DNA of 64,000 nucleotides from NCBI GenBank assembly GCA_021613535.1, contig CP075497.1, forward strand, positions 4,836,001-4,900,000. The letters are read 5' to 3'. Source of the stretch: Adineta vaga (taxonomy: Eukaryota; Animalia; Rotifera). The notes under the pieces are model-generated. The model was not told the origin of the DNA. It did no database searches and worked only from the letters and a program-made list of their open reading frames with translations. The position numbers and the translations under genes were made by a program. Below are positions 1 to 18,842 of this stretch, piece after piece. Position 1 is the stretch's first letter, and every line of letters starts with the position of its first letter.

Positions 1-1608
1 TCATCATCATCATCATCGACTCGGATTCAGTGGCAGTAACCACTTCGCTGCACATGCATGAAAAGAAAGAAAGAAGAAGAGAAAAAAAGGGAATACTTTC
101 TATTTCTAATAATTAAACAGATTAACACTTACTTTTTTTTCTGCTACAGAAAATAGAATATGATCAGATGAATATTTATACATATCGTACAGACAGCTTA
201 TTTTCAATTCCTAGTATTCAAGATAATAAGGATACTATTGAGAAGAATGCAACTATGAATACTAAATTTAGCAATCTCGATCATTTCTGATCTATTCGCT
301 CGATGTTATAGAGGAAAAAATGACTTTGACGTGTCTCAAGAACGTTCTTTTGTTTAGTACCTTTGAAAATTCTCATATGTGTTCGGCAGTAGAAGGTGGA
401 GTAGAAGAGAATATGGGTGTAATAAAGATAAGAATTGAAATCAATTGATTTTCTAACGGACAATGTCTACATACACTATTTATGACGTCGGGCATCGGAC
501 GAACAACGATCACATCAAGGGTACTCGTTGACAATAAGACATGAGGTAGGTGTGACAGAAGAAAAAATAAATATATGATTGATCTCCTTGAGGGCATCTG
601 TGTCATTGATTAATTTTGTGAACAGAGTAGGAAGAGAAAAGAAAAGGTAACATCAAGTGTGGCAACAATCATTAGTTTTTTTTTTGTTCAAAGATTTATT
701 AAACTAACCTTCAAGTGTACTTTGTCTTCATATAATGGTTTCAACTATCTACATATTCAATCTATACATGAACAAGATTGTTACTCATTTGTATGTTATA
801 AATCAAAAAAGATTTTCAAACATAAAATAGTTTTAATTATAACATGAAAAAAAACAAGTTTTGGTCATTTTCTATGATTGACAAATGATGTGTATCATCA
901 TCATCATCATCAAATTTAATCATATCTCTCATCGGATAGATAATGTCCATAATAAAAGCTATAATCTCTTGGGGATGTATGTTGTAGACAGATCGATCAT
1001 TGAACACCACATATATACATAGAGAGTAAGACAGAAGAAGAAAAGTTCTTTTTAAATAAGCAAATGACAAGATGGTTGGTATTAATAATCCTCAACAATA
1101 TGTTCGATTCGGATTCTAATAATCACACAATCCACATCTGCATATAAGCTTTCATATAAAGATTCTTTACAATAATCCATCTTGATATAGACTACTTTTC
1201 ACTTGGCACATACATTGTCTATGTCAAAGTGAGTTACAGAAGAATGATTTATTGTCAAAGACCATGAAGAACGAAACATGGTGACAAAGTACTACTTTTC
1301 ATCAAATTGATCAATGTTACTTACAATGAACATTCTATATAACTAATTATACACAGCTGATACACTTGAACTATAGAACCTTGGGTAAAGATGATCCAAC
1401 TAACTATCTATTTGTGAATCAGAACATATTAAACTTGAAATTTGATCATTAAATATAGATTTTTTCTCATGCATATGAAATTGATGTCAAGTAATATGAT
1501 GCTTATCAACGGATGTCTTTCGTTTGATTGTTTTAATTCAACAAACATTACATAGAAATTATAAATAGGATGAATGCTAAACATCTATGAAGATTTATTT
1601 ATCAAAAC

Positions 1609-2168
1609 TTATTTTAATTTCTGTGCTGCTAATTCACACGGTGTTAGTCCTTGTTGTCGTGTTTTTTCTTCTTCTTCTTCTTCATGATGTGCTTTTTCAT
1701 CATCTTCACATTCACGAATCAGACGTGTATTATCGAATAACATATATGGTTTGACAACTAAACCTAATAATAGATTAAAAAATTAAAAACAAAAAATGAA
1801 ATCAATAATACTACATACGATAAGTATTTTCATCTGTTTGTATCGTTTGTAATACTTCTCGACGAAGAAAACTATCTGTTTCTTTTGCTGCACGAATTAA
1901 CTAATAGAAAATATGGATATGAATTGATTTTCTTCATTCGATGAATAACTTACTTCTTTGATCGTTTTTTCATCGGTAACATTTTTATAATGTGCAAAAT
2001 TTTCTCGTATACCTTGTGTCATACCTAAATAGAGAGATAGATGAGAAAACTTCATGGACAAAATTACTCACTAGCAATTCGTATTGGATCATTTTGAAAA
2101 ACATTTTGTGCGGTACGAAGTAATTTTTTATAATGTGTTAAAACTTGAGAACGTAACGGTGTACCCAT
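1609..2168 (-). CDS. LYRM7: LYR-motif complex III assembly factor (LYRM7/Mzm1), 4 exons; missed by the ORF track
   Basis: Hand-spliced: MGTPLRSQVLTHYKKLLRTAQNVFQNDPIRIA-SMTQGIRENFAHYKNVTDEKTIKE-LIRAAKETDSFLRREVLQTIQTDENTYR-LVVKPYMLFDNTRL...KLK*. GT-AG introns. Follows the LYRM7 pattern (VFxND...F...LLR.V.Q.I.TD). Confidence 0.85.
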
Positions 2169-2326
2169 TACTTCTTTTTAGTTTTCTACAAAATAGAGAA
2201 CAACAAATTTACGATATTGTAAATTTCGATCTTTTCTTTTATTAGTCTTATATTATTAAATAAATATAAATTAGCTTGTACAAGATCAAAGAAAAAACAA
2301 AAGAAAAATTATAGCAGTTTTATTTG

Positions 2327-4191
<1,865 letters not shown>

Positions 4192-4261
4192 TCTGAAAAG
4201 TTGCAATACGTAATAATAAAAAGAACGACGAATATAATATCACTCACTTAAATATGAATAC

Positions 4262-4280
4262 ATTGCGTCAGATTGCGTCA
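4262..4280. promoter_or_regulatory. Tandem ATTGCGTCA x2 (C/EBP-ATF composite-like site) upstream of SerRS
   Basis: cATTGCGTCAgATTGCGTCAg is a direct repeat just upstream of the SerRS 5'UTR intron donor. Confidence 0.45.
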
Positions 4281-4590
4281 GCAATGACGATATATGACAA
4301 AACTATACAGGAAAGTTGCTAGAAATACTTTGAATTGACATCTGCTCGATAAATGATGAAAATTTATATTGTTTTTATGTCTCAAACTAGTAGTCGATAA
4401 ACTATCTCCATCTCAATTCTGAATGGATGTAAACAACATCGCGACGCACATTCGTTCTGTGTAATTCAGATGTCGTTGCTAACCGATTCCACATGATTGT
4501 TTTTATCTGGATAGAAGTATACTATGTACATACTAATCAGATTTATTTCAATACAAGTACAGAAAAACATTTCTAACACTTATTAAAGAA

Positions 4591-5508
4591 TTAAGGAGAT
4601 TTTTTAACAATTGTTCGTAAAAGTCGATTACTGAAAACAAATTCTTTCACTTTGTTTATTAAATATAAAAATGGTAGTAAAGCAGTGACATATTGAATCC
4701 ATGCCCAACGAAATTCTTTCCAGAAACTTGGTACATAACGTATTGATTGTAAACTTGTACTAAGAACAACTCTCAATGTTAATTGTGGTTCACCTGTACT
4801 AGACGATGACCATCGAACATAATCTTGATCGAATGTTGTGAAATAATTACGAGATGTATAATTATTTAATATTTCATTAAGTGATGGTACAAGTGAATAT
4901 GTTCCGTAATTAATAATTGAATCTGAAATTGATGAAATGTCTGAATGATTTGAAATTGGATCTCGTTGATGGAAATTAAGTTGTCCATAAATGGTTACAG
5001 TAGCGTTATCTGCTAATGTTGTTGGTGCTTTCAATGAAATTAATCCAAGTGTTTCCATGCTAATTGTTGAATATTGATTAAGTTTATATTGGAACATAAG
5101 CCAAAGATTGACAGTTGAATCTGCAATTGATTGTGGTAAAATTACATTTAAGATTATTGTCTGTTGATCAATAATATTATCACCATCAGTATCTCGTGGA
5201 ATAGCTGTTCGAAGAGTAGTTGGATAATAATTTGAAATAAAATAATTATTTTGACGTGCATCAGATGAAGAAAAAACAAGAGAGGATGCTGAACCAATGA
5301 TTATTTGATATTTTCCATGATACGATATACGTGGTTGTTCACTATATGTTAATTCTTTATAATAGAAACCACTTGTAAAATAACTCGTAAATAATGGAGG
5401 TAGAAATGTTAGAAGAAGACAACATAGTTGAAAGAAAACAGCACTGGAACATGGATGAGCAAAATAACGAATTCGATGATCTTGAGAGTAGACTTTATAT
5501 AATACCAT
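4591..5508 (-). CDS. TMEM231: Ciliary transition-zone protein TMEM231, intronless
   Basis: MVLYKVYS...LTFLPPL...GFYYKELTYSEQP and C-terminal IRYVPSFWKEFRWAWIQY match TMEM231. Two TM segments. Confidence 0.92.
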   Translation of the reverse strand: MVLYKVYSQDHRIRYFAHPCSSAVFFQLCCLLLTFLPPLFTSYFTSGFYYKELTYSEQPRISYHGKYQIIIGSASSLVFSSSDARQNNYFISNYYPTTLRTAIPRDTDGDNIIDQQTIILNVILPQSIADSTVNLWLMFQYKLNQYSTISMETLGLISLKAPTTLADNATVTIYGQLNFHQRDPISNHSDISSISDSIINYGTYSLVPSLNEILNNYTSRNYFTTFDQDYVRWSSSSTGEPQLTLRVVLSTSLQSIRYVPSFWKEFRWAWIQYVTALLPFLYLINKVKEFVFSNRLLRTIVKKSP

Positions 5509-6451
5509 TTTCTTGGTGATTGAAACTATATTGTCATTAACGAAGATGTTTTATCCAACATTATAGTTTATACTTTTCATATATAACTATGTGAATACCT
5601 CTATACCTGTTTGCTGTCGTATTATTAATCATTACAGATGGAGTTAGTAGTCAATTTTGTTCTCTATGAGCTCGCAATAATCTTTCATTAGAAAGAAGAA
5701 TGAAGAAAAAAATGTATGTAAGGTTCTATCCTACAAACTATCAACGAACACATTTATACGATATAAAAAGTCGTGAAATATCGATACTGCAATACCATTC
5801 CTTTTTTTATTATATCAAAATGTATACTAATAAAATTAACTGCTAATTTCTTACATAAATTTTTAACAATTCCATAAAAACCCTTTATGTTCATTTTCGG
5901 AATAGATTTGATATGCATATAATAATACCGTAGAGATATTTCTAGTCGATTATATAGTATCGATTTATCGGTTCATTTGTAAGATTCATCAAATAGACTA
6001 TTTCTATCGATGATTATCCATAACCACAAAGGCAAATAGGTAAATCAGGACATATCTATTCATTTACAATGTCATTTGACCTGTGGTGTAAATTCATCAT
6101 CATCATCATTTACATAGTAATATAGCCTAGCCTACGCATTCTCTACGACAACAATCTTCGTGACAGGCTAGAGAGAAAGCTTGAGTTATTTCAGGATAAA
6201 GAGAAAGCATAAACAACAGTAACACAAATCGGCCGACGGAAATTACCAGTTATACAGTTGTACTTACTATTATGTAGGAAAAAAAAGAACATACCGAAAA
6301 AAAAAACGAGAAGTACCATCGACTGAAAATCGCCTACATATACCAGAAAAGAAAAAAAAGCCGAAAGAGACACATAATAGCCATTTTTGTGCTCTATTTT
6401 ATCGTATTCCGTCTTGTTTTCTACGATTTTACACGTCCTAACATAAAGAAT

Positions 6452-7367
6452 ATGGCTACAGGTCCAACTGCAAATCGCCCATTGACAAAAACATTTTGTG
6501 CATCATGCCAACAAGCATTCACACCGAAAGATGCCATGCAAATTTATCAAGAGAAATATTATCATCCACATTGTTTTTGTTGTTCAAATTGTGGAAATAC
6601 ATTAGCTGGTAAACCATTTTATCCCAAACCAAATAATCAATTTCAATGTGAAAATTGTAATCATTCACTTGCACCAAAGTATGTCTATTCAATATTCATC
6701 TTTTGATTGTATAGAGAATCGATCATTCTATTTCATTATTATTATTATTATTATTTTAGTTGCTCTGTATGCAATCAGAAGATCCAATCAGGTACTGCAG
6801 CAAAACGATATAAAGAACGTCATTATCACAGCGGTTGCTTTCGGTAGAAAACTTCGATTTGATTAATCAATTTAGTTGACTTTGTTTTCTTTTTCAGTTG
6901 TTGCAAATGTAATGCTGTTATACCTGATGGTAAATCATTCTAAATCTTAGCCATTCTAATTAGACTACTTTGTTTAAATTTATTTAGGACATAATTTTGT
7001 TGATATGTTAGATGGTCGTTTTCAATGTTTAACATGCTCACATCATATTACAGGATCGTATCAAGGCAAAGAACATGCTCCACATCTGGAAAGTATGTTA
7101 GGTGAAGTCGTACCTGTACAATGTGATCAAGCAGGACGTATACCTATTTGTGACAAATGTACACGGCCTGTATCAAGCGAAGAAGATGCATTTAAACTTG
7201 AAACACGTTATTATCATCTTGAATGTGCTCGTTGTAATCGTTGCCGTAAGAAACTTTTAAGAGTTCCATGCCGAAAACTTGGTTCAGCTTTAGGTTAGTT
7301 GAAATTATCGAAAATAAAAATCAATGAATGTGATGTTTCTATTCTAGTTTGTCATACATGCTCATAA
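6452..7367 (+). CDS. LIM-only protein, three LIM domains, 5 exons
   Basis: Three CxxC...HxxCxxCxxC...CxxC units (CASC..HPHCFCCSNC..CENC; CSVC..HSGCFRCCKC..CLTC; CDKC..HLECARCNRC..CHTC) after splicing. Confidence 0.85.
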
Positions 7368-7471
7368 TTCATCAATATATATATAAGTATTAACTCTATA
7401 CAAATAAGCCTGATTATGATATATTTTCTTTCACCTTAATTATTGAAAAACCCTTGATCATTAATTTTATT

Positions 7472-10092
7472 TTACACAATATGAAAGTTTATTCTTTTTT
7501 CTGAAAAAAAATAAAATCGTAAAAATTGAATATTATTAATTAACTTGAACTGTATTGGATTTATGAGGTGAATTGGTGTCACAGTTGATGTACGTACGGA
7601 AGATAATGTTGAATTCTTATTGATTCCATTTGCACGAGAAATACGTCGTTGAACTTTATGTTTAACCATTTCTTTACCAATTTCAACTTGTTTAATCCAT
7701 GGCTTTCGTTTAAAATAATTTGCTTCTTGTAAACAATTGACAGCTGTTGATCGTGTTGATGCACTTGCATAACGTTCATAAGATTTGAGAGTTGTTCGAT
7801 GAACATCAAGATCAAGACGAGATTTGATTGGACTTGCACCAATGTTAATTGGATGATCAGGTAAAGCTAGACATGAATCAATATCCACAAGTGAACCACG
7901 ATTAGTTGATAATGAAGTTGTCAATTGATCTGATGAATATGGAGTTGAATCTTCCTTTTGGTATTGTGGTTGTTTTTGTTGAACATCTCGAACAGATTGT
8001 TCAATTTGTGCGAATAATTGTCGTCTTTTAGCTTCATTCTGTTCTTCAATATCATGTGCGAGACGAGAAGATGAGTATACATAAGCATCAGCTGCTGACA
8101 TTACCGATGGTGAAGTTTGTTTATTATTACTATTGATTAGTTCAGAATAGTATGAGAGTGATGAAAGTGTTGGTGATGGATTTGACATTGAAGATATAAT
8201 TGAAGGCAAGACACTCTTGTCTTTTTCATTACTAATACTATTACGAGATATTATTGGTTGAGGTGTATGCGTTGCTAATTTTGATTTTTCTTTATAAAAG
8301 ATAAGAATCAATATTGAACGATCTGTAACATAAGATACTGATTATATTCTACCTTCATTTAGCGTAGGATTCGTTACTGATAATGATGATGTTCGCAATA
8401 TGCCAGGTGTTGGTGAATGATTATGATCAACTATTGATCGAGCTGTTTTTAAATCTAATAAGAAATAATTAGAATAGATTATGATGGAGATAAGTTACTT
8501 GGGGATAGTCGTGGAGTAAGAATTGAATTTTTTCTTAGATCTGGTATTGTTTCAGATGGTACAGATGTTCGTGGATGTCCTTGATGGTATGCAGCAACTG
8601 CTTGTTTAATAACTCGCCGTCGTTCATCTGATGCAAATTTTTTCATTGAAGTTTTCATTTGTAGAATTTTTTCTTGTTCTTCATCGCTAAAACCAAGATA
8701 ACAATCAGTTCGTGATGCATTATCCGAACGTATTATTCGAAGTTGTTCTGGTGGTACTTCAAATGTATTATTATAACCATCGATTAATACTTTATATCCA
8801 AGTAAACCTGTTTCAGGATAGATTTTTTTTGTTTGTGCAGTTGAAAGTTGTCCACCAAATTTTTTCCATGTTTTTTCTCGTGCTCGTTCGCACCAACTAA
8901 TTAGAAAGAATGAATTTTACTAGAAAAAAAAAAGATCTTCAATAATGAATTTTACCTGACAATTCTGCAATAAATTGGTAGAGAAATGTGAACATGATGT
9001 GGAGATGGACGATGAACAGCATTTGTATTACTTGTTGATGTTAGTAAATTTGTAATATATTCACCATTTGCATTCAATGGTATTCGAAGATAATATTGTT
9101 TATTGTATAAATAAAAATAGATAGAATTATAACATCGTTTTTGATCTTTTGTTTTCGATTTTGATGAATAAGAAAGTGCTAGTCGATATGGTAAACTTCC
9201 CGTAATAGGATCACGTGTTTGTGTACATAAAATAGAATTTTGAACGAAAAGATCAACTAATAACTTATGTCCTCGTTCGATAGCTATATGAATAGGACAT
9301 TGAAGAGTTTCTGGAAATAAATCAATATTTGTACTAGCAGACCATTGACGAGATGGTGGTTCGCCCACTGGACGATCACTTCGTGCACCTTGTCGTAAAG
9401 CATGACCTGCTAATTCCAAATGACCTGAATAGAATTTTGATAGTTTACAAAATGTTCAACTCAATCGTAAAAAAGAAAGAAAATTTACCATAAAAAGAAG
9501 CAATATATAGAGCAACTTGTGCTTGATAATGTCGTGTAAGTTCTTCCGGTGAGAAACGTTCTATAAGACCTTTAACGCAAGCAGCAATAAATTTATCAAA
9601 ACCTTGCCATACTTTTAAATAGACATGATCATGAGTTTTAATATCATAATTAATCAATTTCATTTCATCATATAATCGCTGTGTACCTGAATATGTTTCT
9701 AAACAAAATGTACTCAATGGTAAACCAATTTTCCTCGAAATAATTTGTCTTATTGAACCAATGTCTGTATCCATTGTAATTGTTGAATCAAAAATTTTTA
9801 GTATACGCTTATCAAAAGCACAATAAACATAAAGATCCGCTGCTTTTTGCTCTCGATATAAACAATGAATAATAGCTCCGGATGGAATACCTAAATCTGA
9901 CACTAACCATTGTGGTTTGAGATCAAAACCATTGTAACTAAGAACAACCGATGTTTCCGATGGACCACTACCATGAACTTTCAAACCAAATTTTTGTTTT
10001 GCTAATTCAAGAATTTCTTCAACATGAACATTTTCATCGATATCAATTAAAGTTATTGCTTTTGTTACTGGATAAAATATATGATAACGCAT
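7472..10092 (-). CDS. ANKUB1: Ankyrin repeat and ubiquitin domain-containing protein (ANKUB1-like), about 5 exons; 3' end approximate
   Basis: Two ubiquitin-like folds (GLPLSTFCL, LKVWQGF), QVALYIASFYGH, ALRQGAR, CPIHIAIERGH ankyrin motif, in the ANKUB1 order. Confidence 0.85.
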
Positions 10093-11073
10093 TTTTTTCT
10101 CATTTATTGAATTTTTCTATTAATATAAACATGATTAGAAATGTCAACACTTTCCTCAAAAACAAGTCTATTTATAATAGTCACGACAATTTTTTTATAA
10201 TTAATATAATCAGGAACAGATTTGGAATCAGACATGATTAGAATCGAATCTCTAACCAAATATCTGAAAGCATTGTATTTTTAACGCTAAGTATGTTTAA
10301 AAGTTAAACGATTTTCAGTTAAAAACAATCGCGAAAGATGATGAAAAGAAGAAAAAAAACTTCTTACCTTCGATGGACTGTTGCTCGATCGTTTCAACAT
10401 TTTATTTTCCATGAATATACCAACACTGGTGTCTTCCTTCAATTAATCTAAAAATGATACGAATAGAAATGGAGTTTAAAAATCTACTAAAATATTTGTT
10501 CTTCTTTTTTCTTTCTTACTATTCGATTTAATAACGTCTATTTTTATTTCGCTCAAGAAACAACAACGGATTTCTCTCTTTCTCTCGTATGGACAACATT
10601 CATAATGCATGTTGACAGGCATAATTGAATAAACATAAATACTTCTCGATGTTTCTTTTCAAAAATCCGTATGAGTTATTGTTTTGATGAATAAATTTAC
10701 TAACGCACCTACGCTTCAATATAGATAGTAATGGTAGAAAAACTTAAGAGAGAAATGTTTGCATTAAGTTCTTTTTTTTTAAGTGAATATTTTAACAAGC
10801 ATTTTATGTCAATAATCATGATGGAATTGAAAATATTAGAGGGAAAAAAAAGAAAATAAATACGACGATTGAAATGTCATGTTTAGAATAAACCCGATTG
10901 ATAACGATTGTATGTATTATACTTATGAAGGACAAAAAAAACGGATGAATTTGAATGTAGACAAACATCTGTGTTTTATTATCGAATGATTTTTTAAATA
11001 TCCAACAAAAGAAGTTTTTCGGAGTAGTAGTAGTAGTAGTAGACGATTGAATTGATGTGAATCTAACTAAACT

Positions 11074-11886
11074 ATGATTAATATTAGCTATGTTTTTGTT
11101 TTTTTTAATATTTATATCTTTTTCAAAATAAGTACTTGTGAAATCTTTCCATTTTTTGTCTATGCTGATGAAAATTTTGTAAAATGTTCCGATGGTAAAC
11201 TTGAATCATTTAATAGTACTCAAAATATTCTTCCAAAATGTATTCAAGCAACACAAATAGAACGAATCGATGTTTTTCAATTATTTATTCAATGTCCCGA
11301 TGCACGAGTACATTTTGAATTGAATCGTACATTTCCTTCGAATGCTCCTTCGTCGGAATATTCCCTGACAAGTTTATATCCACATTGTTTTCTCGAACAA
11401 ATTCATCATAATCATTTTATTCCTTATCAAACTCGATATATAGCAGAAAATGAGACATTTACACAAATCATATCATTTCAATGTGATTCATCTAATCTAA
11501 CAAATCAACGTTGGAAATTCAATGAACAATTTTATTTATATTTTAAATTAATGAACTATGGACTTTGTCGATATTTAGTTCAATTGATATATTCCGATGG
11601 GAAATGTAATCGATTCTATCAACAAACGTATAGAATACAACTTCAAATCAAACATTCAGTGTGTTATTATCAATTAGGACTTCAAATTTCAGATAATTCC
11701 TTAGAATATTTTGATCAATTAATACGTACAAATCTTTCCGTTAATAGCCAATCAATTTCTTCGAAAACATCAGCTAATCATTCGATTATTATTATTATTT
11801 TTACTACATCAATGACGGGTATATCTCTATTTTTATGTAGTATCATATTTATACTTATGTATCGGTTTAATCGATTTCGAAGATAA
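11074..11886 (+). CDS. Uncharacterised single-pass membrane protein with Cys-containing ectodomain
   Basis: 270-aa intronless ORF with hydrophobic N-terminus, C-terminal TM (IIIIIFTTSMTGISLFLCSIIFILM) and basic stop-transfer sequence. Confidence 0.65.
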   Translation: MINISYVFVFFNIYIFFKISTCEIFPFFVYADENFVKCSDGKLESFNSTQNILPKCIQATQIERIDVFQLFIQCPDARVHFELNRTFPSNAPSSEYSLTSLYPHCFLEQIHHNHFIPYQTRYIAENETFTQIISFQCDSSNLTNQRWKFNEQFYLYFKLMNYGLCRYLVQLIYSDGKCNRFYQQTYRIQLQIKHSVCYYQLGLQISDNSLEYFDQLIRTNLSVNSQSISSKTSANHSIIIIIFTTSMTGISLFLCSIIFILMYRFNRFRR

Positions 11887-12070
11887 ACAAGAGTCTAAAT
11901 AACAGACAATACTACTTCATCGAATAATAATCGATATTATTAGTTTTCTTTGGGAATAATAAAATAAAATATTGTCTTGTCTTCTTTTAAGATGAATAAA
12001 AATTTATTATTGAAAATTCAGTTAGAACGAATGAAAGAAAACGAGTTTTAGAATTTGTTGCTCTAGTCAT

Positions 12071-12844
12071 TCAAACATGAAGGAATTGAGTTGTTCTATT
12101 CCAATTCCATAACCATTTGTAAATACGAAATAGAATGTAACCAACAAGAAATCCAGCAATAGGACCAACTGCATAAATCCAAGCTGTTGAATGATATGTA
12201 CCCGAAGCTACGGCTGGACCTAACCATCGCCATGGATTTAATGCAGCACCATCTCGATCAGCACCAAGTAAAAACGATGAAAAGACTACGAGTCCAATAG
12301 GATATGCTGCTTCTTTATGTGAATTATATGTCGTTGTAAAGAAAATGACGAATGAAAGGACTGTCGTACAAAGAAATTCAATGGCAAATCCATGCATAAC
12401 AGTTACACCAGGTTGAAGTCCTGGTGTACCTAATGTAGTACCTGTACCATATAAACAAAGAAGTAATGCACCAGAAAGTAGAGCACCTGCAGCTTGTGCG
12501 ATCAGATAACTAATAATTTCAATAATTTTCATCTTACCATCGAAAGCAGAAGCTATCGTTACTCCAGCATTAAAATGTCCACCAGAAACAGGTCCAAATA
12601 CATAGACTAACCATACTGTAACTAGTGCATGTGCAGCAGACACAGTTAAAAGATTATCTGTTTTCGTTGCACAACCAGCACCAAAAAATATAAATAAACA
12701 AGTACCTATTAATTCACATAATAAACGCACACGAAGTGGTGGTGGTTGTATAAATCCATTGTCAAGTCCATTGGGAGATAATTTCGTATATGGATCCGAA
12801 GAAATTGCATCACTTGGATTAATTCTAATAGCACTTAAAGACAT
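12071..12844 (-). CDS. Aquaporin (MIP family, AQP8/TIP-like) with non-canonical NAG/NPW motifs
   Basis: ELIGT, SGGHFNAGVT, YLIAQAAGA, EFLCT, ALNPWRWLGPA, WIYAVGPIAG. Six TMs, intronless CDS. Confidence 0.93.
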   Translation of the reverse strand: MSLSAIRINPSDAISSDPYTKLSPNGLDNGFIQPPPLRVRLLCELIGTCLFIFFGAGCATKTDNLLTVSAAHALVTVWLVYVFGPVSGGHFNAGVTIASAFDGKMKIIEIISYLIAQAAGALLSGALLLCLYGTGTTLGTPGLQPGVTVMHGFAIEFLCTTVLSFVIFFTTTYNSHKEAAYPIGLVVFSSFLLGADRDGAALNPWRWLGPAVASGTYHSTAWIYAVGPIAGFLVGYILFRIYKWLWNWNRTTQFLHV

Positions 12845-13522
12845 CTAAATTAATAAAAGAATAAAGAAAATCATTTGATATCCATTTAGTGACAAATAAA
12901 GTTAAATTCCGGTAATAAATGTATCAAACAAAATGCATGACCTTTTTTAGCTGTAAATTTAGTCAGATCGTCATTTTATCGTGTAATGAGATTCACATTC
13001 CAAAATGTATACCTATATTTATCTGTAGATAAAAGATAAAGTTTACACGTATCATCTTCTTTTCTTTTTCAATGATACTGTCATAATTACATCGTATTTT
13101 CTTTAACATTATGTTATCACGACTTTTTTTTTTTGCAAGATGATTTCGTAAACATTACAATGAATACATAGTTTTTAAGAAAAGAATTCGAATAAAAGAA
13201 GTATTTTGAATGCAATATGAAATAATACAATATGTCAGTTTTATCTAATAGGTTTTTATATGAATATTTTCATTCTTTTATTGTATTAAATTACAATGAC
13301 TTTTATATTATCTCAACTCATTTCATGATTACATAGATATAACAAAACTTTTATTTTACGTTCTTTCTTTCTTTTTTTGTTATTTGACATAGCAGTATGT
13401 ATATATCATACTATCAGACTCAAAAAAGAAGTTTTTTCTCTTTAATCTATCTCTTTTCTTTCTCGTGTATACTGATATGAAGACCACAGTTGTCGATTCA
13501 AGATAAATCACACTATCGTGAT

Positions 13523-14455
13523 ATGTCATCGAAAAGTATAGGTGTGTTTGATATCTACGATGATTCTTTTCGTTGTTTAATTTCTTCAACAGCTACTCTT
13601 CGTCGATTGTATACTGGTTTAACCTGGGCTGAAGGTCCAGCATATTTTCCTGCTTTACGTACACTTGTCTTCTCTGATGTTGCCGAAAATCGTTTATTAC
13701 GCTATGATGAATGTAATGAACAAACAAGTATTCTTCGTTCTCCATCTTCTCATAGTAATGGTAATACTGTTGATCGTCAAGGTCGTTTAATAACATGTGA
13801 ACAACAGACGAGACGTTTGACAAGAACTGAACATGATGGTAGTATAACTGTACTTGTCGATCGTGCTGAGAATGAAAAACGTTTTAATAGTCCCAATGAT
13901 GTTGTAGTAAAATCCGATGGATCAATTTGGTTTACAGATCCAACCTATGGTATTGACTCAGATTATGAAGGTGATCGAGCAGAAAGTGAAATAAAAGGAA
14001 ATTTTGTTTATTGTCTAAAAAATCGAATTTTACATGTCGTAGCACGAGATTTTGAACAACCTAATGGATTAGCTTTTTCACCTGATGAACGTCGTTTGTA
14101 TATTGTCGATACTGGACGAAGTCATCGACCAAAAGATGGACCAGCACATATTCGTGTTTTTGATGTAGGAGATGATGGTATTACATTAACTGGTGGACAA
14201 ATTTTTGCTGATTGTTCAACTGGTTTCTTTGATGGATTACGTATTGATTCCATAGGAAATATCTGGACTAGTGCTGGTGAAGGAGTATCATGCTATAATG
14301 GAAATACTGGTGCTTTATTAGGAAGAATTCGTGTTCCTGAAATTGTAGCTAATGTATGTTTTGGTGGTGGTGTAAAACGAAATGTTCTTTATATTTGTGC
14401 GACAACTTCACTTTATTGTATTCGATTAGCTGTGAATGGATGCAAAACTTTTTAA
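13523..14455 (+). CDS. SMP-30/gluconolactonase family protein, bacterial type (HGT candidate)
   Basis: WAEGP, SNGNTVDRQGRL, NSPNDVVVKSDGSIWFTDPTYGIDSDYEG, PNGLAFSPDE, DGLRID. Intronless. First ATG at 13523. Confidence 0.92.
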   Translation: MSSKSIGVFDIYDDSFRCLISSTATLRRLYTGLTWAEGPAYFPALRTLVFSDVAENRLLRYDECNEQTSILRSPSSHSNGNTVDRQGRLITCEQQTRRLTRTEHDGSITVLVDRAENEKRFNSPNDVVVKSDGSIWFTDPTYGIDSDYEGDRAESEIKGNFVYCLKNRILHVVARDFEQPNGLAFSPDERRLYIVDTGRSHRPKDGPAHIRVFDVGDDGITLTGGQIFADCSTGFFDGLRIDSIGNIWTSAGEGVSCYNGNTGALLGRIRVPEIVANVCFGGGVKRNVLYICATTSLYCIRLAVNGCKTF

Positions 14456-14928
14456 AAAAAAAGATTATTTGTTCAATTTTTCGAATAAACCTAGAGTGAA
14501 TATTGATGTAAAATACTTTTCATCTTCTAATCAATAAAAATGTTAATGAATTAACTTTTATTGACTAGTTTTTATTTAAACAAATATATCATGACGCATT
14601 GATTTACATATGTGAGAGAATATCGGATATTTCGTCGAAAAAAAAGAAACTATTTATAAAAAAATAAAAATGGATGTTTCAGTAATTCATACAAGATGTT
14701 ACATGTATCGCCGTTGTTCTGGTTCGACTATTATTATTTCTCATGACGATATATATTGTTTTAATTTAGCATATTCAAACAATAAAAGCAACAACAACAG
14801 CATTCAGATCAAATAGAAAAAAAGATTAAAAATAAGCACACTTCAACACACATATTCCATGTAAAAAAGAACATAAAAATAGAAAATATTCGTACAGATT
14901 CTAATCATTTTCTCGCAGGATTAACAAT

Positions 14929-17900
14929 ATGAATATCAGTTATGATATGATCGAAGGTAATACATTTATTAAAACAAAATGTTCAAAATAACAACAACTT
15001 AGATTTCTAATAAATATATTTCTCTAATCGAATTAAACAATTTATATTCTATTTAGGTTTTGACTTTGATACAATGTTTTCTCCTATGTCGGAGTTACAT
15101 TATACTCATCTTGAACATCAAACTAGAGAAGAAAGTTCGGAACAAACGATCAATATTCCAAATAACTTATCGGATAGTGGTTATATCAGTGAAATCGACA
15201 TAAATGAAATCTTGACTACTGGTATTGAGTAGAGTTCTTTTTTAAAATAACCTCGTTTTCTCTATATGTATGTATGTACAGACAATCAATCACAAATGCT
15301 ATACTCTTTGAATGAAAATCCATGTAACTTTGAATCGATACAACAAGTTCGATCTAATGAAACATGGATAAGTCATATGGGAAGTCTTCGCAAAAATGAA
15401 TGTTCATTAATACGAAGAAATGTTCCTCGTTTTATAAGATTTCACACTGATGGTTAGTTTATTCAATCTATACTAAATCTAACACTACAACTTATCTAAA
15501 TAGGTACTAACTATCATATAAATTGTGTATTACATATTCTGTTCAATTCATTGATATTTCTGCGATTGATAAACGTATTAAAAAGAATGATACATAACAA
15601 TCTTGTTGATTTACCATCAAATTTATATAATAGTTATGTTAAAACAAATGTCTCAAATGAAAAGAATACTTTTTATGCTTTATTAAATATTGTTGATATT
15701 GCCTATCAAGAATATCGAAATGATGACACTGCGAATTATTTGATTCAATCGATATATCATGTCGATAAAGGAATTCAGCAGAATGTCGTTGATTTTTATA
15801 ATTTTCTCTTGAATAATTTACGATTGATTGCTATTGAAATGAATCAAACAGAAATCTTTTCAAAATTATTCGAAATTAAATTTACTGAAAACACTGATGG
15901 ATGTGAATCACAAATTAAACGAGAACAATTTATCAGTATCAACTCACATCAAAGTACTATTGAAGAATATATCAATAAATATTATACTGGTACCGTAGTT
16001 AGATATAACAATGGACATATCATTGAACAACTATTTGAACAACTACCCGAACAATTATTTATCATTATTGAAAGACAACATAATGACATTTGTACCTATT
16101 GTGACTATCCAGCAGAATTTAAAACTTGTCGTAATCAGTACTATATATTCAATAGTGCTATAGTAAAACAAACCATGTTCGGTAATGATAATCATTGTAT
16201 TGCTGTCGTACGTCGACAAGATTGTATATATCTTCTCGATGGTCCTCAGATTATTGATCGTTCTCATATAAATTATCTATCAACCTATTTTCAAATGGTA
16301 GTATCATTTTTTTTCATTGAAATTAAAATAAAATCTTCTGGACACTTTCTATCATCTGTGTAGGTTCAGGTACAAAATCTTTTATATACTGAAGTCGATC
16401 CATTACATGGCTCAATCTGCATCTTTGAAGATCCACTATACGGAATACTGGCTGGTGAAACAAGTAGTAATATTTCAACAGATCTAATATCATTATCAGT
16501 AGAATCTTACGCCAGTAAGTATAAAACCATATTCAAAGTAATACTACAATAATTTTAATTTAGCATCTCGCATTATTATGCGACATCCCATCGCCAGTAC
16601 GTTTCGTTATTATATGCACAGTGATTTTTATCGACATAACATTAATATTACAATACCTACGTTAAATGATTGTTTAGGTGAACAAACGCTGTATCTTTGG
16701 GTAAATAAAATATCAAATAACAATTATGCTCAATGAAAGTCTTCTTTTTGTTTTTTGTTAGCCTCGTTCGATGTTTGTTGGAGCTTTGCTTGAGTGTACT
16801 TTAGTATCTTTAGCTTCAAATGGATCTTATTATCGAAGTCATTTTGAATTTGTTCTCAATGAACTTTCAGGTTTAAAATTTGAGAATTCAATTTATTTCA
16901 ACATTGATGAAGGCAATTCATCCGATGATCAATGGTTTCCGTAAGTACATTACATAAACTTGATCAATAAAGATATTTGTTTCTCTTTACAAGTCTCCGA
17001 TTGACCATATCAAAATCTAAACAGAATATGTTTCAAAATAAAAATCAACAACAGAATGACAGAGAAGATGATCATCAAGAAAATTCTCTATGTCAACTTG
17101 TACGATATCCTGATGGTATATACAATATCATCATAGTTTTATTAAGTCTAATATTATAAAGTTGTATCTATAGGTAATGTCGAAAATATTGATCAAAAGA
17201 AGTTTTTATCATTCATAAAATACAAGAAAATGAATAGAAGAAAACTTCATAAAACTTCTGCAAATATAACTCCATACAAATTATCAAAAGTCGCCAATCT
17301 GAATTCAATTTGTCTTGCTATTCGTCGAGTTCGATGGCTTCCAGATGAACAGAAATATATACCACAATCAGATGTTTTGTGTTATTCAAATATTTTTACA
17401 CCAGGTATATCTAAAAAGAATATGGATAACTATGAATATACATATCTTCGTTTTTCATTCAGTTCCTTCTTCAATAAAGAAAACTAATTATAATTATTGC
17501 GCAGATCAATTGCAAATTATCGATGTATGTCCATCACAAGTATCATTCGCTTTGCAAACGAATCATTGTACAATTCGTCTATCGTATTCAGTAAGTAAAT
17601 GAGTCTTTTTGTTTCGTCATGTTATTATTTGTATTTGAAAAGATTCCAAAAATGTATGAATGTACATCTCTCAAAGATAAATATGTAAAAATAATGATCT
17701 TAACTGGTAATGATCAAAGACCAGATTCTTATCCATCATATCGATTTCTTCATGATCAAAATTGAGTGGAATCACTCATGTTTTCAGCTATGAATTATAC
17801 TAATACGTAAATGTTCAAAATTTGTCGACTACTAACACTGATATACTTTATAGCATAACATTGATTATTGTCAAATGTACTGTGCAAGAATTCCAAGAGA

Positions 17901-18226
17901 ATGGTAAGTAAGATATTCGATGTGGAATTCAAGTCTTTTATTTCGCATAGAAGTAATTCCAATTGTAGCTCAAGATGGTTTACGAACACTTATTCATAAT
18001 CTCAGTATGGATACCTTTCACATTCAATTACAACTATGTCATGCTGCAAACGATCAATTTATTATGTATGAACATTCGACAGTGAAATCATCAATGATCA
18101 TTGGTAATAAATGTCACTTTTTTGTAGATCAACAAATGTAAGATATATATCTTTTTAGTTAATGAAGAAAGACAAGTTTCGTTATCATCGATGAATACAT
18201 CATTGACTCCATGTCATTTCGAATGA
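14929..18226 (+). CDS. Multi-exon protein: DSGYIS degron + USP-like (pseudo-DUB) domain + divergent Rel-homology/IPT-like region
   Basis: About 15 exons splice in frame with GT-AG introns. USP-like boxes GTNYHINCVLHILF, LPEQLFIIIER, NHCIAVVRRQDCIYLLDG. RHD-like segments RIIMRHPIASTFRYYMHSD, LLECTLVS, LNSICLAI...CYSNIF, then LQIIDVCP. Confidence 0.7.
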
Positions 18227-18842
18227 AGTTTTTTTGCTAACGAATATTTTGTTTTTCAAACTCATGTATTTTAAATACAATAAACTTGAGTGTGGTTCGT
18301 AGTCATTGGAGAAGATTATTCCAGTAGATTCGAAAACATTCCTTAGACAAATTCAATTCACGCAATGCAATAGTATGTATTTTGAAAAGTAAATAATCAT
18401 GATATGAATGCTAATTTCTATTATTCTGTCGAATTATTATCATTAATATCTTTTCAATATGCTCAGAAGACAATAAACAAGAAAACACTGTTTTCAGATG
18501 ACAGACACACTGATTATATACATAAACATTCAAGAAAAAGGGAACGAGAAAAAGAAAGAGAAAGAAAAAAAAAGTACAATCATCATTATCAATTATTCAT
18601 TACAAATTAGCAATAGAAATTGAAATAAAGAAAAAAAACGAACAAGAAATTGAGCACGACGTAGAAAAAGAACACCATTCGTACATAATATTACTTTTCA
18701 GTATACATTATTGAAGAAATTAACAAATAAATAAACAATCTCTTAATAATGTGAGAAGGAAAAGAAATAGGGAGAAAATATATGTACACATTCGTTAGTA
18801 TCGATCTGACCAGGATAATTACTATATCTGTTTTGAAATTAT

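Follow-up and report, generated by a model that had tools for sequence, protein, structure and literature searches.

A gene of the bdelloid rotifer Adineta vaga that appears to join an inactivated USP core to a divergent Rel-like module

Overview of the gene

The window analysed here is a stretch of 64,000 nucleotides from the bdelloid rotifer Adineta vaga (GenBank assembly GCA_021613535.1, contig CP075497.1, positions 4,836,001 to 4,900,000 of the forward strand), and the subject of this report is one gene of 14 exons on its plus strand, at window positions 14929-18226. On balance, we read this gene of about 846 codons as encoding an acidic N-terminus, a dead ubiquitin-specific protease (USP) core, a linker, and a very divergent two-domain Rel-homology region. 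The gene is real, transcribed and lineage-specific. Its parts follow one another in that order, the catalytic Cys of the USP core has been lost, most of the gene is transcribed and spliced, and it is conserved within Adineta. The features on which this reading is built are listed below, where L002, L003 and L004 are orthologous metagenome loci and P0051 and P0052 are protein models of Adineta steineri.

15057-15221, plus strand: exon 2, acidic N-terminal region, of which only the start (FD..D.FSP..EL) recurs in L002, as judged by eye
15173-15190, plus strand: DSGYIS in exon 2, proposed beta-TrCP degron
15282-15452, plus strand: exon 3, conserved lead-in to the Cys box (LR.NE..L..RNVPR...), kept in L002-L004, P0051 and P0052
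15504-16297, plus strand: exon 4, divergent homologue of the USP (peptidase C19) catalytic core
15512-15514, plus strand: TAT (Tyr) at the catalytic Cys position
16193-16195, plus strand: CAT (His) of the His box, retained
16364-16514, plus strand: exon 5, conserved linker (..LLYTEVDPL....C.FEDPL..), kept in L002-L004 and P0051
16564-17404, plus strand: exons 6-9, first beta-sandwich by predicted fold, resembling the N-terminal (DNA-binding) Rel-homology domain
17463-18103, plus strand: exons 10-13, second, Ig-like beta-sandwich by predicted fold, occupying the place of the Rel dimerisation (IPT-type) domain
17763-17765, plus strand: in-frame TGA, codon 743 of 847, in exon 11 of the reference
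18159-18226, plus strand: exon 14, short tail and stop codon, the tail being unconserved in L002 and L003

The USP-like domain and its catalytic residues

Exon 4 opens with the Cys-box-like string GTNYHINCVLHILF and also contains the His-box-like string NHCIAVVRRQDCIYLLDG, which aligned to the His box of USP12 and is followed by an Asp at 16238-16240 (..YLLDG). With the Pfam family UCH (PF00443), exon 4 of the window alone scored 18.5 bits, below the gathering cut-off of 23.9, and the relatives P0051 (34 bits), P0008 (26), P0011 (27), P0028 (39) and P0017 (47) scored above it. A profile of the USP part built from 22 family members (A3) matched solved USP structures, USP12 with E = 5.3e-6 and USP46 with E = 3.6e-4, as well as Ubp6/USP14, USP1, USP2 and USP21. 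Nearly all matches of this profile were USPs, with a few weak matches to other proteins. On these sequence comparisons, we regard the homology of exon 4 to the USP core as settled. An earlier note on this DNA, drawn from the letters alone, had called this part a pseudo-deubiquitinase with Tyr at the catalytic Cys position and a surviving His box. Both residues were seen in exon 4, and the assignment was borne out by the relatives that pass Pfam UCH and by the matches to solved USPs. Because the catalytic Cys is Tyr, the A. vaga head cannot hydrolyse by the normal thiol mechanism.

The loss is distributed unevenly over the family. The orthologues do not share the Cys-to-Tyr change: in the A3 alignment, L002, L003 and P0051 retain the catalytic Cys, as do P0049, P0011, P0017, P0023 and P0028, and P0052 has Gly or Leu. 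The His is retained in the window, L003, P0049 and many others, and was replaced by Tyr in L002, P0005 and P0006, by Arg in P0051, P0052 and P0014, and by Ser or Asn elsewhere. Both residues are kept in only about half of the family members. This patchy loss among close relatives implied that inactivation has been recent and repeated, and the relatives that keep both Cys and His suggested that the family probably started from an active deubiquitinase attached to the C-terminal module.

The sequences around exon 4 are conserved too. The lead-in string of exon 3 recurs ahead of the Cys box in P0011 and, in abbreviated form (..TPRL..), in P0028, both as judged by eye. A stretch resembling exon 5 follows the USP domain of P0028, a protein of Didymodactylos.

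The C-terminal Rel-like module

The predicted structures of relatives showed the C-terminal ~400 residues as two beta-sandwiches. Two models were used. Model 1 covered the whole module and was predicted with AlphaFold from the Rotaria sordida paralogue P0018 with a 19-row alignment (mean predicted local distance difference test score, pLDDT, 66.9). Model 2 covered the N-terminal domain and came from the A. steineri orthologue (P0051:457-697) with a 31-row alignment that included the window exons as separate rows (mean pLDDT 69.3; predicted template modelling score, pTM, 0.69). The proteins behind the two models are only ~33% identical.

In the Foldseek search of Model 1 against the PDB, the top 23 matches were all NF-kB/Rel chains, the best being p50-RelB with E = 4.4e-7, and NFAT came next. 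Model 1 aligned across both domains to RelA-cRel, p65, p52 and TonEBP, and only Rel-family chains spanned both. For Model 2, Foldseek placed p65 and c-Rel first with E of about 7e-4, and Rel chains ranked first in both aligners used (Foldseek and VIA-align), with 149 of the 168 residues of the p65 N-terminal domain covered. After the Rel matches, the scores dropped to 6.5 for a pilin, and Velvet, EBF1, STAT, p53, T-box and Runt followed at 5-6. A feature search of the ESM Atlas with P0051:457-870 also ranked Rel-homology clusters first (score 0.88, 176 shared features), and the ten best hits having a family all agreed on Rel-homology. The shape search of the same Atlas returned a rotifer cluster with PF00554 in 14% of its members. 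Taken with the model-based searches, these matches suggest that the module probably shares ancestry with Rel-homology regions.

The DNA-contacting L1 loop of Rel proteins carries the motif R-x-R-Y-x-C-E-G. A family motif, R-[FYI]-[RY]-[YM]-x-S-D, which reads RFRMASD in A. steineri and RYYMHSD in the window, appears to lie where the Rel L1 loop has R-F-R-Y-x-C-E (register set by eye, a lead only).

The second domain was less specific. Taken alone, it matched the Ig-like domains of GH2, FN3 and Sec63 as well as it matched Rel, and since so many Ig-like folds fit equally, its identity as an IPT domain is not established. A homodimer prediction with two copies of this domain (A4) scored 0.00, which weighs neither for nor against dimerisation. 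The C-terminal strings in which the earlier note had recognised the order of a Rel homology domain followed by IPT are all present and in that order. Its Rel-homology part was upheld by the predicted folds of the relatives in Foldseek and VIA-align and by the Atlas features, with Rel first among the Foldseek matches as the note had foreseen; its IPT part was not, the second domain alone fitting many Ig-like folds, and no sequence method recovered the similarity of the module to Rel.

Several points weigh against the reading given at the outset. The folded proteins were relatives with 30-54% identity and not the window protein itself, the confidence of the models was middling (mean pLDDT 67 and 69), and the template modelling scores (TM-scores) were low, at 0.25-0.49. 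The Pfam families of the Rel homology domain (PF00554, PF16179) matched neither the window exons, nor the 19 family members, nor the A. steineri orthologues at E up to 10, and no Pfam family of any kind matched the module. The family hidden Markov models (HMMs) A1 and A2 gave only spurious hits against PDB sequences, with no Rel chains among them, and the ESM Atlas feature search with the half-domain present in the public A. vaga model (P0001:285-393) gave no usable hit. None of the public RNA-derived contigs from four A. vaga runs covers exons 4-6 (15444-16760), exons 2-3 and 7-14 being covered. The reference allele combines the Cys-to-Tyr change with a premature stop, and the A. vaga copy could accordingly be in decay.

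The points that concern the module would be accounted for if it were a bdelloid-specific, generic pair of Ig-like domains without Rel ancestry, with the NF-kB matches reflecting the commonness of the fold and a bias of AlphaFold and Foldseek. The missing Pfam and HMM signal, the low TM-scores, and the equal matches of the second domain to GH2, FN3 and Sec63 all fit that explanation. It is nevertheless somewhat unlikely, since two models from such dissimilar proteins ranked Rel first in two aligners, only Rel-family chains aligned over both domains, and an independent feature search also ranked Rel first. Ancestry shared with Rel-homology regions is thus the reading followed below.

The ESM Atlas shape search returned, in addition, a cluster confined to rotifers, 70% of whose members carry an OTU deubiquitinase domain, with a module-shaped region (TM 0.40 over residues 135-381 of the model). 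This is a hint that, in rotifers, similar modules may also be joined to deubiquitinase heads of a second kind.

Association of the two parts in one gene

The USP-like and Rel-like parts very probably belong to one gene. No RNA contig covers exons 4-6, so the junction between them rests on gene models and colinear conservation. The NCBI A. vaga model P0001 bridges exons 4-7. The A. steineri models P0051 (939 aa) and P0052 (889 aa) each contain both modules, and window exons 3-13 are colinear with residues 95-864 of P0051. The metagenome loci L002, L003 and L004 have the same exon order and spacing as the window gene, and in both L002 and L003 the orthologue is also flanked by the aquaporin and SGL genes. 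The USP part and the Rel-like part are separated by introns of only 49-66 nt with an open frame on either side; between exons 5 and 6 lies a GT..AG intron of 49 nt. The neighbouring genes of the window are as follows.

12086-12883, minus strand: aquaporin (MIP) gene, upstream of the focal gene, syntenic with the metagenome contigs L002 and L003
13481-14455, plus strand: SGL gene (SMP-30/gluconolactonase/LRE-like), upstream, syntenic with L002 and L003
18416-20250: downstream neighbour gene, conserved in L002 and L003

It could be argued that two adjacent genes were merged by annotation into single-protein models, the USP-like one finishing around 16514 and the Rel-like one beginning around 16564. 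Exons 4-6 without an RNA contig and an ATG within exon 6 are compatible with such a boundary, and each part also occurs alone in relatives: the C-terminal module without a USP domain in Rotaria P0021, P0029 and P0031, and the USP part without the C-terminal module in Didymodactylos P0028. We consider this arrangement very unlikely, given that the supposed boundary is a 49-nt GT..AG intron with the frame open on both sides, that the NCBI A. vaga model joins exons 4-7, that the A. steineri models, including the full-length P0051 and P0052, join both parts, and that the linker exon 5 is conserved. The single chain proposed in the earlier note is thus likely by gene models, colinearity and short introns, with its junction unseen in the RNA contigs.

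Exon model and transcripts

The coding region consists of 14 exons with a total of 2541 nt, or 847 codons counting the final TGA. All 13 introns are GT..AG, with lengths of 47-100 nt, in a window that is AT-rich (~30% G+C) and has short GT..AG introns generally. The exons and the likely end of the transcript are located as follows.

14929-14956, 15057-15221, 15282-15452, 15504-16297, 16364-16514, 16564-16700, 16762-16940, plus strand: exons 1-7
16994-17115, 17174-17404, 17463-17590, 17643-17806, 17854-17903, 17951-18103, 18159-18226, plus strand: exons 8-14
18279-18284, plus strand: AATAAA, likely polyadenylation signal, 53 nt past the stop codon

The contigs of the four runs skip GT..AG segments, which implied that they derive from spliced RNA. 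Nine of the 13 splice joints were seen in them. Introns 1, 2, 7, 8, 10, 12 and 14 were confirmed as predicted, the joint 18103/18159 being present in contig X3. Two acceptors were shifted by the RNA: that of intron 9 to 17462, so that exon 10 starts at 17463 (14 codons more, in frame), and that of intron 13 to 17950, so that exon 13 starts at 17951 (6 codons more, in frame). Both shifted acceptors match the relatives better. The segment 17643-17806 is unspliced in the RNA contigs. A continuous frame in the reference is possible only if the 81 nt at 17707-17787 are counted as an intron, but the RNA contigs and homology to the coding sequences of L002, L003 and A. steineri showed that they are exonic. 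Except for one TGA, the 14 exons form a single open reading frame. The note's splicing of the exons into a single frame was therefore correct as to the GT..AG introns and most joints, which appear in RNA, and needed amendment at the two acceptors and at the 81 nt, which are exonic and hold the in-frame TGA. The gap in RNA coverage at 15444-16760 is possibly due to a more divergent expressed allele, low depth, or read filtering.

In-frame TGA and allele differences

The TGA at codon 743 lies in the second Rel-like domain and would cut off the last ~100 residues. In all four RNA runs, the contigs have C at 17763, giving CGA, and the site is unspliced. Arg is found at this position in every orthologue examined (L002, L003, A. 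steineri). The TGA of the reference is either a nonsense codon of the reference allele or an assembly or haplotype variant, and the expressed sequence sampled in the public runs is intact at codon 743. Many further sites differ between the RNA contigs and the reference, with up to 8 differences in 124 bases (6.5%), which implied that the contigs come from another haplotype or strain. In one contig of run X1 (17116-17181), four of the first eight bases of exon 9 differ from the reference and change Asn-Val to Asp-Ile, an indication that the allele or strain is strongly divergent at this locus.

The gene is 37-57% identical to its orthologues in L002 and L003, and the SGL gene is 82-86% identical in the same loci. 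Judged by these sequence identities, the focal gene family is fast-evolving. Both the Tyr at the Cys position and the TGA at codon 743 would suit a decaying pseudogene without a function of its own, and the low identity relative to SGL and the single copy in the genome could be read in the same way. Such decay is quite unlikely, however. The gene is transcribed and correctly spliced, all four runs read CGA and not TGA, and apart from this one TGA its 14 exons are open in one frame with GT..AG introns. Many relatives have lost Cys or His and yet look intact in other respects, as is typical of pseudo-enzymes.

The DSGYIS motif

The earlier note had placed a beta-TrCP degron, DSGYIS, at 15173-15190, and the motif is indeed encoded there. 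With the composition of the pooled exon translations, DSGxxS is expected ~0.008 times per protein, and it was found once in the six-frame translation of the window. It is rare for a single protein and unremarkable in a scan of many windows and motifs. Exon 2, where it lies, is conserved less than any other part of the gene and gave no significant tblastn match in the orthologous loci. DSGxxS was absent from the A. steineri proteins P0008, P0042, P0043 and P0044 and from the scanned paralogues in Rotaria, and neither L002 nor L003 has it in the N-terminal exons; it was not seen by eye in the A. steineri proteins P0051 and P0052. The nearest string in L002, also found by eye, is DSTPDN. As the motif is missing from all orthologues examined, both in A. 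steineri and in the metagenome loci, the degron claim found no support in conservation. DSGYIS is most likely a chance, lineage-specific and meaningless match as far as sequence comparison can tell, and a working degron is highly improbable.

The full model of the note, in which DSGYIS is an SCF-beta-TrCP phosphodegron that makes a signal-degradable Rel-like factor, draws on the position of the motif within an acidic, Ser-rich N-terminal region, on its low expected frequency, and on the use of DSGxxS by NF-kB p105 and IkB. Its absence from every orthologue and paralogue examined and its location in the least conserved exon leave this model with hardly any credence. A signal-degradable, ubiquitin-sensing Rel-like factor is speculation.

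Family spread, annotation and copy number

The locus lies on contig 6 of an assembly of 100.8 Mb in six contigs. The only exact database match of exon 4 was P0001, the NCBI hypothetical protein I4U23_028782 of A. vaga. This model has 393 residues and runs from an internal Met of exon 4 through exon 7, where the donor (..CC|GTAA, 16941-16946) was read through into a stop. With this internal start and donor read-through, the N-terminus, the Cys box and exons 8-14 are absent from public annotation, and taken whole, the locus is effectively unannotated. The gene was single-copy in genome searches, and the family profiles A1-A3 found nothing beyond the locus, except that A3 touched one other place (C4:11913726-11913890, L013) in the His-box region with E = 0.003. 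L013 is probably an unrelated USP gene.

Matches to the family have so far come from bdelloid rotifers only. The C-terminal module without a USP domain is found in Rotaria and A. steineri proteins of ~490-550 residues. The A. steineri protein P0042 (CAF0943024.1, 1828 aa) is a merged model that consists of a first USP-Rel copy, SGL, and a second USP-Rel copy, a layout which implied one copy on either side of SGL in A. steineri, against a single copy in A. vaga. The first copy has lost both Cys and His, and the second has kept both.

Canonical Rel genes were sought in the A. vaga genome with PF00554, PF16179 and a degenerate RFRYxCEG pattern, and none was found by this method, which does not prove absence; the exact motif R-x-R-Y-x-C-E-G occurs nowhere in the genome. 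TLRs have been reported absent from A. vaga (PMC8609888, PMC6043800). Our literature searches on rotifer or bdelloid NF-kB, on rotifer Rel proteins, and on a fusion of Rel and deubiquitinase found no relevant paper.

Proposed working of the protein

The Rel-like module, if its predicted fold is a guide, would serve in DNA binding or in partnering of the Rel type. The USP-like head may have begun as an active deubiquitinase tethered to this module. In A. vaga it would now be non-catalytic, with at most a putative role in ubiquitin binding or in regulation of the module. The start of exon 2, which is acidic, rich in aromatic residues and shared with L002, would fit a putative activation region in its composition, and so would the acidic tails that the A. 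steineri proteins carry. Bdelloids may even have their own class of Rel-type factor, in which a deubiquitinase or pseudo-deubiquitinase head on the same chain replaces control of the IkB/ankyrin type, a proposal that we regard as tentative and unlikely. In such a class, the DNA-binding factor itself would read ubiquitin chains, or take them off at chromatin.

Comparison with known systems

In animals, immunity and stress responses depend centrally on Rel-homology factors, which are normally under the control of separate ubiquitin-pathway enzymes. A USP-type domain joined to a Rel-type module would couple ubiquitin signalling to transcription in a new way, and would mark how much divergence the Rel fold can undergo while staying recognisable, here to the point of being invisible to Pfam. 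The gene offers a starting point on the control of stress and immune genes in bdelloids, and the patchy loss of catalytic residues among its close relatives provides a natural series for studying the passage from enzyme to pseudo-enzyme.

On the USP side, USP39/Sad1, PAN2/USP52 and USP53/54 are pseudo-deubiquitinases in which the USP core lost a catalytic residue and stands beside another functional domain. The window gene likewise has a catalytically depleted USP core next to a partner domain, but its partner is Rel-like, and some of its close relatives lack Cys or His while others keep them. In the NF-kB pathway, CYLD and other USPs are active enzymes on polypeptides separate from the Rel factors. 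Like the window gene, CYLD links the USP fold with transcription factors of the Rel type, whereas here the USP-like domain and the Rel-like module apparently form one protein.

On the Rel side, p50, p52, p65, c-Rel and RelB were the best fold matches of the predicted module. NFAT and NFAT5 (TonEBP) have the same two-domain fold class, and TonEBP and NFAT1 were among the structural matches, but they have no detectable sequence similarity to the window gene, which is without a regulatory region of the calcineurin type. NF-kB p105/p100 and insect Relish also carry a two-domain Rel-type module and a regulatory domain on one chain. In those proteins the regulator consists of C-terminal ankyrin repeats, whereas in the A. 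vaga gene it would be an N-terminal USP-like domain, combined with a module that has no Pfam match to the Rel homology domain, an L1 motif that is at best partly kept, and no conserved degron.

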